Source: Saccostrea cucullata
Lineage: Eukaryota
DNA length: 64,000 nt
Reading direction: 5' to 3'
Assembly (NCBI RefSeq): GCF_032062105.1
Contig: NW_026933409.1
Span: 434,001 to 498,000, forward strand
A program made the translations under genes and the position numbers. This document shows positions 29,001-55,400 of this stretch, in pieces (the first letter of the stretch is position 1; every line of letters begins with the position of its first letter). Below the pieces are notes generated by a model, which did no database searches, was not told the DNA's origin, and saw only the letters and a program-made list of their open reading frames with translations.

Positions 29001-32000
29001 GTCAGAAGACACGTTCCTCAAATGTATGTTTTGTATCTCTTGGCATTAAATAAAAAATTATTCATATTTGTCATTCTCTTCTGATATCTACACTGTTTTC
29101 AAAATGTTTTAAATATAAGTAAACCAAAAATTGTGATATAGGCCATTCACAAGATTACGCATAAGGGTTATATAAGAAATAAGACCCTGTGGTATCTTGT
29201 CCAAATGCCTTGTAAGGTACCTTAATTTTTTGTGAGGAAACTTCTTTTAGTACATATTCTTCATTGACAAATTCTTGGGAAAAATTATAATTTTTAGGAA
29301 CGTGTCATCTGACCTTAAATTCAGGCTTCTCTCATTAATAAAGTTGAAATCGTCAATTTATTACGCTGTCACTGTTAATTAGTATATAATTATGTTGTTA
29401 AAACATTCTAGATTATTATTGTAAACATAACTACTATAACGTGATATCTAAATTGCTTGAGTTTTTGATTGACAATTGTCATGTATTAAGAGATGATATC
29501 TTCCAACAATATATCGGAATATGCAGTGGGTACCACTTACTTCCCTTTATTCTTTCTGTATTCATATGAACAAGAATTTATTCAAAATCTGTTATATGAG
29601 AAGGGAAAATTTGTTTTAATCATAATAAGAATGCGTTGTCCATTTATTTAAATGTCGAGTTGGCCCTAATTGTATTCGTATTATTAATTAGCGATATAGT
29701 TACTTCTATTCATATGTCGACTCAATGTATACATGTGAGCTTGAAAAAAAAAATGATAGTATAACATCTGAAAAATATTATTTCATATTTTACAAGAAAA
29801 GGACGTTAACCCTAAGATTTTTTTTGATAAATCTGATTTCTTCAACTTTTCAATCATCGTCTCCCCTTACTTATGAAGCAATACACTCATATCACCTCTC
29901 TCAGTTGATTCGATACACAAGAGTATGCTGTACGTACGAACAATATCTGAAACGATGTTAGTCTTTGACAAACAAGTTGATGAGACAAGGATATCAACAG
30001 ACTCATTTAAAGTCTTAATTTTGCAGGTTTTATGGTTGATATAATGAGCTTCGATATATATATTTGAGAGATTTATGTGTTAAGATACAATTTTCATAGG
30101 TTTTTATATTGAGGGAGACGCAAAAAGCTTTTTGTCAGCGACAATATTTTACAACTATCTAAGTTTACTTAAAAAGAAGGAATGCATTGCTTCATTTTTT
30201 TCAAAGCTATTTTATGTTTTTAACGCATACATATATAGAATCTCCCACGATTTGTAGTTGAATATAATTTTTATCCAACAAGTTTTGTGATTTTTATCCC
30301 CGAGCCTTTGCGAGGGTATAATAACACACAACGAATTAGATAAAAATCATTTCCAACTACAAATCATCGGAGATTTTTTAATATTTTGTTTTATACATCA
30401 CTTTCAATGTTTTACACTATCTTTTTTTGTAAATCTCCACTTCAATTTTCATCACATCACTCTGACGCAAAACCCATTGTGACCTCACAACAGTTACTGT
30501 AGTGTATGAAAAAAATGTCCATTGAGACAATATCCACGGGATAAAGGGGTAAACACTGGATAAAAGATTTTACTACATGTATATTGAAAATAAAGAAGAA
30601 CGTTGTTCTACGGCATACCAAAACATAAAATATTCTGCAACTGAAAAATCATTTTTTTCCTTCATTTTTTGTGTTCACATTATGTTGAACTAATAGATGT
30701 AAATGAAAGAAATGCTGAGGTATCACTGTACATGTATTTCAAATGTGACACTATTTTTGTGTCTGATTTTTTCTTTATAACGCCATCACTACTGGTTTCT
30801 GTAGTCAAGGAAGATTGAATTAATACTGAATATCTAAGCCATGAAATAATTAATTCTCACTGGGGACACTTTTACATCACAGTCTGTCATTAGATGTAGA
30901 CGTAACGAGAAAGTACTGTTTAACGAGGCCCTAAAACGGCTTATCATTATATATGACTAAGGAAGAAAAGCAATGTCTAGGTTTAATTATAAATATTAAT
31001 CTAATACAAAGAATGGAGTTAGCAAAATGGACACACCNNNNNNNNNNNNNNNNNNNNNNNNNNNNNNNNNNNNNNNNNNNNNNNNNNNNNNNNNNNNNNN
31101 NNNNNNNNNNNNNNNNNNNNNNNNNNNNNNNNNNNNNNNNNNNNNNNNNNNNNNNNNNNNNNNNNTAAAACTGATAGCTCTTTTTATATATATATTCTTT
31201 TATCCTTGGTGGTGCATATGTTTTCATTCACTTCAGTTAAATTTTACAATGGTACTAGCTTAAATGGTTGTCTTTCGCTATATTATGTTTGGACAAAACC
31301 TTCAGGATTTGAAATGAAATGACATAACAAAATTTTTCGGCCAATGAGAACTTAAAATTTTAATACTCTATTGAGTATTCATAGTTATGATGTACAGACC
31401 ATATGCAGGTGTTAGGGGCTTATAACAAAATAAATAAGGAAATTTAACGATGGGAAAGTTGACGTCTACTTTAATTGTTAATTGGCCCTTTTTGTCCATA
31501 GTCCGTAAAATATTCAAATATGAATCAGTAGATGTGACAGACATTGCGATGTATTTATTTTCGAATTCTTTTGGATATATCGATTCGACGTATGAAGATA
31601 TAATTAATGTAAACCTTGTGACTGCATAATGTATAAAAATTATGCATTTAATCACATGTTTGATTATGTAATGTACTAATTGCTAATGTACTAATGCAAT
31701 TAGATATCCTAACCAATAATGACACACATCTTTTTCCAGGTAGATACACTTCCGGTGCCTCATTATATGGGAGCCTTTGCGACCTTTGGTCTCTCGCTCG
31801 TTTGTTGTTGGATCCATGCTGCCATTACATACAAACTCTACAAAGAGGAGAGAAAGTCGGGGCTTAGATACACATTTATTGTACAGATTATAGTTAGTCT
31901 TGCCATCACCATCAGTTTTCTTACCTGTATCCTTTAACAACACGTGTACCTGACTGGAAAGGCCACTACCTGTGATCATATTCAATAGTTTGTCACCCTT

Positions 32001-52423: not shown

Positions 52424-55400
52424 ATGAGTCTCGCGTGCCTGGTCTTCCTTAGGCGCCGCCTATATCTGCTGCCTCTAATCACCGCACTCTGGATCATCAT
52501 GGCTTTCTTCATATCGTAAGGCAGATGTTAACAAAGTTCAATTGTTTAATTCAAGTATTTTACAACCTAAACGTGCTTCTGCCAAATTACTCTTATATAA
52601 ACCATCAAGGAGAAGCTGACATTTTGAATTTTATTGATATCTTCAGTTAACCCTGACAATAGCATCTTGTTGTTTGAAATTCTCTGTTAAAGTTTAGGAG
52701 GAATTTTACTCCAAATATTGCACATGAGTAGATTGATACACGACCAGAGTATTTTATTACATCTTTGGTATCTTTTATAATTTAAAGGTACGGCATCTCC
52801 ATTAAGAGCGGCTCTGTGAAACCAAATGATTTCCCCTACATCAGGTAGGAACCTTAACAAACGATGCAAGAGGGAATAAATAAATCTGAGATAGTTATCA
52901 TATTTTTTCCTCCAAGCACTGTGTAGTATTTGTGTATTTGTTAGATATGATTATGAGTAAAGTTATGGTTTGAGAAAAATCAAATAAATTAGGTTAGTCA
53001 ATCAAACTTGAAGTTGAATTTCTTGAATCTGTACTTTCTGAACCTGTACACTAAGTTCGGTCGTTCATGTTTTAACACAGAACCAACAAGTTAATGATGC
53101 ATCGAATTACCACCTTCCGATTGTGTAGGTTAATTAAATGTGAAAATGTAGGTGTCTTAGTATCAATCAAACAATTCTAAATTAAAACACATGGTTCTTG
53201 CTTTATTCTTTAATTAATCCCTAGGTGACGACTGGACAAGGTTCATTTCGTGTGTAGAAATATCTGACTTTACCTTTTTTTTTTTTTAAAGCTTGTTTTG
53301 TCCTGTAAATAAGTGAATTTTAACATAATAACCAGCAAATTGATTTTCAACAACATTTCAATTAACCATAACATATTTTTCAGTCAGAACCCCAAACTGT
53401 GCATACATTTCTACATGTAGTTAAAATTTCTGAAGTAACAATAGAAAAGAGAAATGCATGAGGTTTCAGAATATTTTTAAATAGAATTTTGTTTAAATTA
53501 TAGGAAATTTCACTTCGTTCTCAAACATTTTAAAAAATATATAATAAAATTACATGTATTATATTTTTTTTTAAACCAAAATTGTGTTAGGGATATAAAT
53601 AATTAAATCTAAGCCTTGTATGTATAACATGTATAAATGTATGGGAAAGAAATTGGATTTTTGGTTGTATTTGTTTTTTTCTAATTATTTAAGTTGTGGT
53701 CTGAAACATTTAAATAACAAGTTTTGTTTTTATACCAAAAAAAAAAAAAAGATTTTGAAATGATCATATTTTTTTCCCTCTTACTTTGTTGCACCCCTGA
53801 TATTTGATATGCTTTTACTGAACAAACAATATCTCATTCAAAGTTTTTGTAGCTTATCACAGTTTCATTGGGGGGGGGGGGATAAATTATGGTTAAATTT
53901 TTTTTCTTGAAAAGGATATTATAATAGACTATTTTCTTATGTAATATATAATAAGATTTTTTACTTAGTAATAAAAACTGTTCTTGAATTTACTGTAAAA
54001 CATCTGTAATTTAATGATATAAATTATATTTTCAATTACAAATAGAATCAATTTTTTTCTGCGATTTCTATCACAGAGAGATGAAGTTAATCAAAAATTT
54101 TGAAGCAATTTTGTTTTTCCAGTTGTAACGACTTTATGTATAATATAAAAAATAGGGGAAAGTGTTGATATTTCGGACACTTCAGAATGCTTTTTCGGAT
54201 ATACTTGGCATTTACGTAATGGATATATGCCGAATACTGTTCTATATGTAAAATTATCAGACTGTTTGAGGCCCGTTAGGGCCGAAAACTGTCTGATAAT
54301 TTTACATATAGAATAGTATGAGGCATATATCTTACTTAAAACATTGCCATTTAAATGTCCAAAAGTTACCTGGAGGAGTCCGATAATAACACAATGGGAG
54401 TTTAGGCATCAATTGTTTTTTACCCGTCTAATAAGTAGACAAAAGAAAAGAGACAGTAAAAACAGTGGGTGAACTCTTGTTTCATTCCATTCATTCAATG
54501 GCAGTCGTTTAGATAAGCAAGACAGGGGTCCGGTGGGGAAGGATTTCCTTTTTATTTTGGAACATTTTTATTATTTTGTGCATTAAATTGACCTGATACA
54601 GATTTTTTTTTGGTGGAATTATTACCGTCACCATGGAAAGTAAAAATGCGGATTTTCATCCTAGAGTTTTAGTTTATATAATGGAAATTCTCAGGTTTTA
54701 CAAGTGCAGCCATTTAGAAACATCCTTATAAAATAAATAGATTTGCCGATTATTTCTCAGAAATGGATTTAAATTCGCTTATTCAAAGTGCTGTATCAAA
54801 AACACTTTAAGATGGGAAGTATTAATTTTGAGGATGGTTTAAACTCGATTTTTTCATGGATTTGCTACTTTGTAGCAACTAAATTTCCTTGCGATTGCTT
54901 TCCCTGATTTTTTTCCTTTTTTTTTGGTGGGGGTGGGGATGGGGGTTAGGAGGGTGGACATATTTAGTTTATTCCACTCTTCTTTTGGTTTTTAAATACC
55001 GTCCGATTTTGTTATCATTGCCATCCGATAATATATTATCAGACTGGTAATTATTATTATCGGACGGCTACAGGTAAATTTTTAGACCGCAAGAACAAAG
55101 GCATGACGTCACAGCAATGTTTTAACGCTAAATATAGGCATGCTATACACCGTTCGATGCAGAAAAGGTTCCGCTACTTATTTTCGTGGTACATCAGCTC
55201 TTTTCTTGAGATAATATCATTAGTAAACGCATTTAAACAGTACCAGGTAGGAGGTTGTAACTTCGGACAGTGGTGTTGTAACTTCAGACACACGGTGTTA
55301 CAAAGTCGGACAGTGGGTAAAAGAGGTATTACTTGCTGCTGTGTCACACAGATTACACGATGGTCGTGCTAATTACAGCAGGGAACTTTGACTAGCTTTT

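Follow-up and report, generated by a model that had tools for sequence, protein, structure and literature searches.

Hairpin-ended elements in the analysed region

The analysed region (referred to below as the window) is a 64,000-nt stretch of contig NW_026933409.1 of the Saccostrea cucullata genome (positions 434,001 to 498,000; assembly GCF_032062105.1), with a G+C content of 32%. The assembly comprises 1.17 Gb in 23,869 contigs. The window contains three non-coding elements, representing families 1, 2 and 3, each of which begins with a long imperfect hairpin followed by a short box complementary to the opposite terminus of the element (Table 1). In the family 1 element, 47 of the 53 positions of the hairpin arms form Watson-Crick pairs. 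The six exceptions are two 5'-GA/5'-GA tandem mismatches, one G-T wobble and one T-T mismatch. A search of the window against Rfam gave no match.

Table 1. Features of the three hairpin-ended elements (positions are those of the window)
Family	Position	Strand	Feature	Details
1	54213..54215	+	TA-rich flank motif next to the hairpin end	TAC here, TAN in the family; present in integrated copies, absent from the joined-end form
1	54216..54221	+	Left end proper	First four bases pair with the TTAC spacer at 54332-54335
1	54222..54331	+	Terminal hairpin (110 nt)	53-nt arms 54222-54274 and 54279-54331; GTTA loop at 54275-54278; GA/GA tandems at 54232-33 x 54320-21 and 54268-69 x 54284-85
1	54336..54347	+	12-nt box	Exact reverse complement of the far terminus
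1	54348..55113	+	Non-coding internal region	Carries all the subfamily-diagnostic variation
1	55114..55125	+	Far (right) terminus	Pairs with the box
2	2499..2501	+	TTA flank motif	Invariant in 21 of 21 copies; absent from 10 of the 11 joined-end junctions
2	2502..2653	+	Terminal hairpin	Window copy of the apex-deletion subfamily; GA/GA tandems at 2540-41 x 2608-09 and 2546-47 x 2602-03; apex GA at 2574-75
2	2654..2668	+	Box	Complementary to the far terminus that ends at 3199
2	3182..3199	+	Far terminus
3	30231..30237	+	(TA)n flank motif
3	30238..30380	+	Terminal hairpin	Old, decayed window copy; apex GA/GA at 30302-03 x 30312-13; outer tandem lost on the left arm (G to A at 30280), kept on the right arm at 30333-34
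3	30554..30565	+	Far terminus	Decayed in this copy

The initial annotation of this sequence had described the family 1 hairpin, its two GA/GA tandems and the 12-bp inverted repeat formed with the far end, and had reported the same layout at 2501-3199 and 30234-30593. These observations were confirmed, and the coordinates given for the family 1 element were exact. However, the third element ends near position 30565 and not at 30593. In addition, the three families, which the annotation considered to lack any sequence similarity, do share an apex theme: GA, a short G+C stem, and a loop that is GTTA in two of the families.

The mismatches are features of the family consensus

Searches of the genome revealed at least 925, 4379 and 987 candidate copies of families 1, 2 and 3, respectively. 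For each family, 22, 27 and 20 independent copies were aligned. The alignable sequence stops sharply at both ends, and the flanks are unrelated.

It had been proposed beforehand that perfectly paired consensus hairpins would identify the GA/GA mismatches as copy-specific decay. This was not the case. The consensus hairpins of families 1, 2 and 3 carry two, three and two GA/GA tandems, respectively. The family 1 consensus equals the window copy, whereas the consensus hairpins of the other two families hold more tandems than their window copies. In family 2, the innermost of the three tandems flanks a GTTA loop, and the window copy belongs to a subfamily that has lost 12 nt of this apex. The window copy of family 3 has lost one of its two tandems by CpG decay.

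In all fourteen arms, GA is preceded by a pyrimidine and followed by a purine, which is the context in which tandem G-A pairs adopt the stable sheared form. Only one other tandem mismatch (GC against AA) occurs in the three consensus stems. If tandem mismatches were drawn evenly from about one hundred possible kinds, the presence of GA/GA in three independent families would, by our rough estimate, be about a one-in-a-million event. Given the copy numbers and the consensus status of the mismatches, a chance origin is excluded.

The hairpins and their mismatches are under selection

To examine whether the hairpins are constrained, the distribution of variants was compared between the hairpin plus box and the interior of the elements. 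The copies of family 1 differ by 2-12% overall. However, variants shared at the subfamily level occupy 0 of 126 hairpin-plus-box sites and 0 of 33 far-end sites, compared to 127 of 745 internal sites (hairpin plus box against internal sites, Fisher p=7e-10), while private post-insertion variants are equally dense (0.30 against 0.27). The propagating lineages therefore kept the hairpin letter for letter, including its mismatches, while dead copies decay evenly. A similar constraint was found in family 3 (6 of 152 sites against 38 of 153; 1.4e-7), but family 2 shows no overall difference once the apex deletion is counted.

Families 2 and 3 each show a compensatory double change in the stem (positions 35 with 136 and 8 with 132, respectively), while the GA tandems stay unpaired. 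Thus, pairing is selected where there is pairing, and non-pairing is kept at the GA sites. Copies in which one arm changed from GA to TC, giving perfect pairs, are single cases (the copies at fetched loci L011 and L067).

The mismatches have a fixed polarity

The initial annotation stated that the GA tandems always lie on the strand where the hairpin is 5'. This holds for five families, one of which has a 6% flipped minority. All 69 aligned copies of families 1-3 carry the GA form on the strand that reads hairpin, then box, then body. Two more hairpin-plus-box elements were found by chance in the fetched loci. One of these, at L051:3083-3247, has a GAA apex and G-T wobbles on that same strand. 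The other, at L019:742-880, appeared to be a counter-example, with pyrimidine mismatches and a TTC loop on that strand. To resolve this, both forms of the latter family (family 4) were counted throughout the genome with two plain sequence patterns. The purine form followed by the box was found in 195 copies, compared to 13 copies of the L019 form, in which a further GA site is also made perfect. The rule therefore holds in five families, with occasional apex inversion in one. Even with generic DNA parameters, the plus strand is predicted to fold 1.5-3.4 kcal/mol better than the minus strand.

It is also possible, although we consider it unlikely, that the mismatches act in double-stranded DNA. 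Each GA/GA is a 2-nt direct-repeat island (often CGAG) within an inverted repeat, so that in the duplex both arms read the same short motif in the same direction. In this view, the islands would give a symmetric palindrome a direction for a DNA-binding protein and would also keep the long palindrome from extruding and being deleted. Long perfect palindromes are unstable, and the rare copies that became perfectly paired are single copies or a small minority. However, any mismatch would break a palindrome, yet all seven GA/GA consensus tandems occur in the one context that gives stable sheared pairs, and the G-T wobbles and the loops favour the same strand. The one-sided target motif and the missing target duplication described below also point to single-strand chemistry.

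Insertion sites and joined ends

Six paralogous uninterrupted sites were available for the family 2 copy of the window. They show a T-run target with nothing duplicated, and no target duplication was visible in the flanks of the aligned copies of the three families. Upstream of the hairpin end, each of these families has a conserved TA-rich stretch: TAN in family 1, TTA in family 2, preceded by a weaker T-A-W, and (TA)n in family 3. The other border has no adjoining motif, and only family 2 shows a T-A at +7/+8. The possibility that the 3-nt motif is a target duplication was rejected, since the right border is not variable and not matched. It should be noted that in family 1 the third base of TAN follows subfamily, which suggests inheritance rather than target choice.

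End-to-end junctions are rare: exact pattern searches for a far end abutting a hairpin end identified 1, 11 and 2 loci for families 1, 2 and 3, respectively. All but one of these junctions lack the TA-rich stretch. The junctions carry far-end-type letters and are therefore true end-to-end joints, which may represent tandem dimers or integrated circle junctions. They equal the reverse complement of the hairpin foot plus box, exactly in family 2 and save a 2-nt bulge or a G-T wobble in families 1 and 3. In the joined form, the helix therefore runs on through the junction into the box.

These results exclude ordinary cut-and-paste (DDE) MITEs with neutrally decayed mismatches. The copies are short, non-coding and numerous, and they have an inverted repeat, as would be expected of MITEs. 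However, symmetric terminal inverted repeats flanked by a target duplication are absent: the repeats are asymmetric, with one terminal and one internal, the paralogous sites show no duplication, and the mismatches are in the consensus and under constraint.

Relationship to Helitron2/Helentron elements and Cryptons

The layout of the elements corresponds to that published for Helitron2/Helentron (HLE2) elements and their non-autonomous derivatives (HINE, DINE-1, Cg_HINE), which have 8-16-nt asymmetric terminal inverted repeats, one at the very end and one internal beside a stem-loop, show no target duplication and orientation-specific insertion, reach high copy number and have joined-end forms (PMC3627910, PMC4067079, PMC7492417, PMC11417382, PMC5148889). 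In the five families found here, the box and the far end are complementary over 12-17 nt, and the stem-loop lies between the subterminal repeat and the element end. A 'reverse' form (FoHeli3-5 and proto-Helentron), with the stem-loop 5' of the left repeat (PMC11417382), matches the present elements when they are oriented by their target motif. Rep transposons of the HUH class insert in one orientation at short motifs without duplication and use hairpins (PMC10288648). However, the stems described here are 53-78 bp long, compared to 5-20 bp for HINE palindromes, and carry conserved GA/GA tandems, which are not mentioned in the cited Helitron/Helentron reports. The insertion of HLE2 elements is reported to occur between T and T. 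The site of the family 2 window copy is a T run, while the flank conserved across copies is TTA, TAN or (TA)n and lies only on the hairpin side. No description of GA mismatches in Helitron, Helentron or Crypton ends was found in the literature searched.

To identify an autonomous partner, the genome was searched for Helitron Rep domains, which gave at least 150 scored hits, many located inside open frames of 2000-2800 aa. The three frames scanned carry the DUF6570 and Rep domains, and the nearest Helentron proteins are from mussels and oysters, at 69% identity or less. Three Helentron loci, one from this genome (L093 plus L094), one from a related ENA contig and one from Mytilus, have only 12-13-bp perfect hairpins with ACGAAG loops downstream of the ORF and no long GA hairpin within 6-10 kb. 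The ends of the Helentron from this genome remained undefined after a search for inverted 11-mers and a coordinate-only copy search, since an abundant unrelated repeat dominated the results. Pfam searches with the ten longest of the 34 open frames of 130 aa or more found, besides the two Helentron pieces, in about 300 kb of sequence (leaving out 24 frames of 130-170 aa) identified MACPF, Harbinger DDE, reverse transcriptase, esterase, ankyrin and C1q, and no recombinase. Among the sequences examined, no autonomous copy sharing the ends of these families was found.

Alternatively, the elements may be non-autonomous Cryptons, a reading that we regard as possible but less likely. In this case, a tyrosine recombinase would recognize the joined ends, with the hairpin plus box providing an inverted copy of that junction. 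In a folded strand or an extruded cruciform, the two recombinase-binding arms would come together, and the GA tandems would fix the strand or orientation used, as extrahelical bases do in integron attC sites. Crypton-type DUF3504 domains are abundant in the genome (at least 150 scored hits among 500 candidates, many in open frames of 250-520 aa), and the Helentrons examined lack long hairpins. On the other hand, published descriptions report no terminal inverted repeats or hairpins for Cryptons, and none at all for animal Cryptons (PMC3212892, PMC13465315), while inverted repeats are present here. A crossover in a shared overlap predicts the same short sequence (4-6 bp) at both element borders and once in the junction. 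This fits family 1 loosely (TAA) but fails for families 2 and 3, which argues mildly against the crossover model. None of the first 100 listed copies of family 1 or family 4 lay within 15 kb of a listed recombinase hit, and none of the copies compared lay within this distance of a listed Rep hit.

A model of the transposon end

We propose that each of the three elements is a non-autonomous, orientation-specific DNA transposon whose cis-acting end is one long hairpin followed by a 12-17-nt box that is the reverse complement of the opposite terminus. On the purine (GA) strand, the order is TA-rich target motif, hairpin, box, body and far end. When this strand is single-stranded, the hairpin would fold and the far end would pair with the box. 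The 3' end would then lie next to the 5' end on a continuous helix (a self-splint), so that the ends could be cut and joined into a circle that leaves the target motif behind. The tandem GA/GA mismatches, the G-T wobbles and the GTTA or GAA loops would keep the helix intact on this strand, but would give pyrimidine bubbles and A-C mismatches on the complement, and would thus mark which strand is the substrate.

The anatomy of the elements, the selection on the hairpin and its mismatches, the fixed polarity, the lack of a target duplication, the one-sided target motif and the joined ends that mirror the box were all demonstrated by the sequence analysis, while the folding of single-stranded DNA, the role in strand selection and the identity of the enzyme are inferences. 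We hold with high confidence that the GA/GA tandems are selected, strand-fixed parts of a self-splinting transposon end. That they mark the strand which is folded and processed is probable, and a reasonable but unproven inference. As for the enzyme, we favour an HUH Rep-helicase of the Helitron2/Helentron group acting on a 'reverse' layout (probability about 0.45-0.5), since the footprints fit an HUH enzyme better than a tyrosine recombinase.

The interpretation offered in the initial annotation, i.e. movement through a folded single-stranded or cruciform intermediate with strand selection by the GA tandems, possibly driven by Crypton-type tyrosine recombinases, is thus partly supported. The tandems are indeed selected and strand-fixed, the elements are not cut-and-paste MITEs, and the footprints fit a folded single strand or an ends-joined intermediate. 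However, the layout itself is already described for Helitron2/Helentron elements, and an HUH Rep is at least as likely as a Crypton recombinase.

The mechanism by which Helitron2/Helentron-type elements (and Cryptons, if they are involved) recognize their ends is barely understood, and no strand-marking code is known to have been described for any eukaryotic transposon. In the present case, thousands of copies in at least four or five unrelated families share one simple structural rule (GA/GA tandems in a pyrimidine-GA-purine context, purine loops, one fixed strand, and a box mirroring the far end) with measurable selection, which makes the question directly testable. The rule can also be used to annotate such elements in mollusc genomes, where they are easily mistaken for MITEs.

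Comparison with other hairpin-dependent systems

The footprints resemble those of the bacterial IS200/IS605 family (IS608), which has strand-specific imperfect hairpins at the ends, inserts just 3' of a short motif that is not duplicated, and forms a circle junction that leaves the motif out. Insertion 3' of a short motif that is not duplicated and is left out of the joined ends was also observed here. However, the IS200/IS605 family is prokaryotic and uses a Y1 HUH enzyme (TnpA) with no helicase, which is not known in animals. It also has a hairpin at both ends and 4-nt guide pairing, whereas here one hairpin plus a 12-17-nt box would serve both ends.

In integron attC sites and CTX-phi attP, imperfections of the stem of a folded single strand decide which strand is recombined. 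These are bacterial tyrosine-recombinase substrates, and their markers are extrahelical bases or a central bubble, not sheared GA tandems. A more speculative and, in our view, doubtful extension of the model is that a eukaryotic transposase, either a Crypton tyrosine recombinase or an HUH Rep, reads a folded single DNA strand whose identity is encoded by sheared GA/GA tandems and purine loops, with the transposon end acting as its own splint. This would be an animal counterpart of integron attC and CTX-phi recombination.

DIRS elements also have an internal sequence complementary to the joined ends and a circular intermediate (PMC13465315), but they are retroelements. Finally, in the left-end hairpin of the parvovirus minute virus of mice, an HUH nickase reads a hairpin whose small purine mismatch bubble makes the two arms unequal. 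That hairpin is a viral rolling-hairpin replication origin with flip-flop inversion, whereas the polarity of the elements described here is fixed apart from the 6% minority in one family.

Additional features of the hairpin families and other repeats

A fourth hairpin-plus-box family was found to exist genome-wide in two apex orientations, with 195 copies in the purine form and 13 flipped. In the flipped minority a neighboring GA site is also converted to perfect pairs, which suggests rare inversion or hairpin-templated repair of the inner palindrome. In addition, single copies were identified in family 1 (locus L011) and family 2 (locus L067) in which one arm reads TC instead of GA at one or both tandem sites, so that the stem becomes perfectly paired there.

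Analysis of the flanks of 21 family 2 copies showed that, besides the invariant TTA, there is a T-A at -6/-5 and another T-A at +7/+8 around the insertion point. The two TA steps would lie about one helical turn apart in the empty site. In the case of family 1, the 26-mer comprising the hairpin foot plus box occurs exactly 176 times in the genome. Two of these 26-mers lie on the same strand of one contig (C441) only 819 nt apart, less than the 913-nt unit, suggesting a tandem pair with a shortened unit.

A very abundant repeat (16,426 first-look candidates) starts downstream of the Helentron ORF in L093 plus L094, the Helentron locus read from this genome, and opens with 12-13-bp perfect hairpins carrying ACGAAG loops on the ORF-sense strand. 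The same hairpins are present in the related ENA contig L095, where they are followed by arrays of TGACC-type half-site palindromes, which probably correspond to estrogen-response-like arrays. Within the window, an imperfect palindrome with arms of 48-65 nt, rich in G-T pairs, recurs about eight times. It is located in the repeat that also provided the empty site for the family 2 copy, and probably belongs to the Penelope-like elements. Finally, a family 1 copy (locus L014) sits inside a tandemly repeated ankyrin-repeat coding region.

Coordinates of the additional features
Feature	Sequence	Position	Strand
Fourth-family hairpin plus box	L019	742-880	
Abundant repeat downstream of Helentron ORF	L093	3500-5330	minus
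ACGAAG-loop hairpins	L095	12285-12650	
Paired family 1 26-mers	G000 (this genome), C441	12004-12848	
G-T-rich palindrome	window	37603-37764	
Family 1 copy in ankyrin-repeat region, and its flanks	L014	2398-3900
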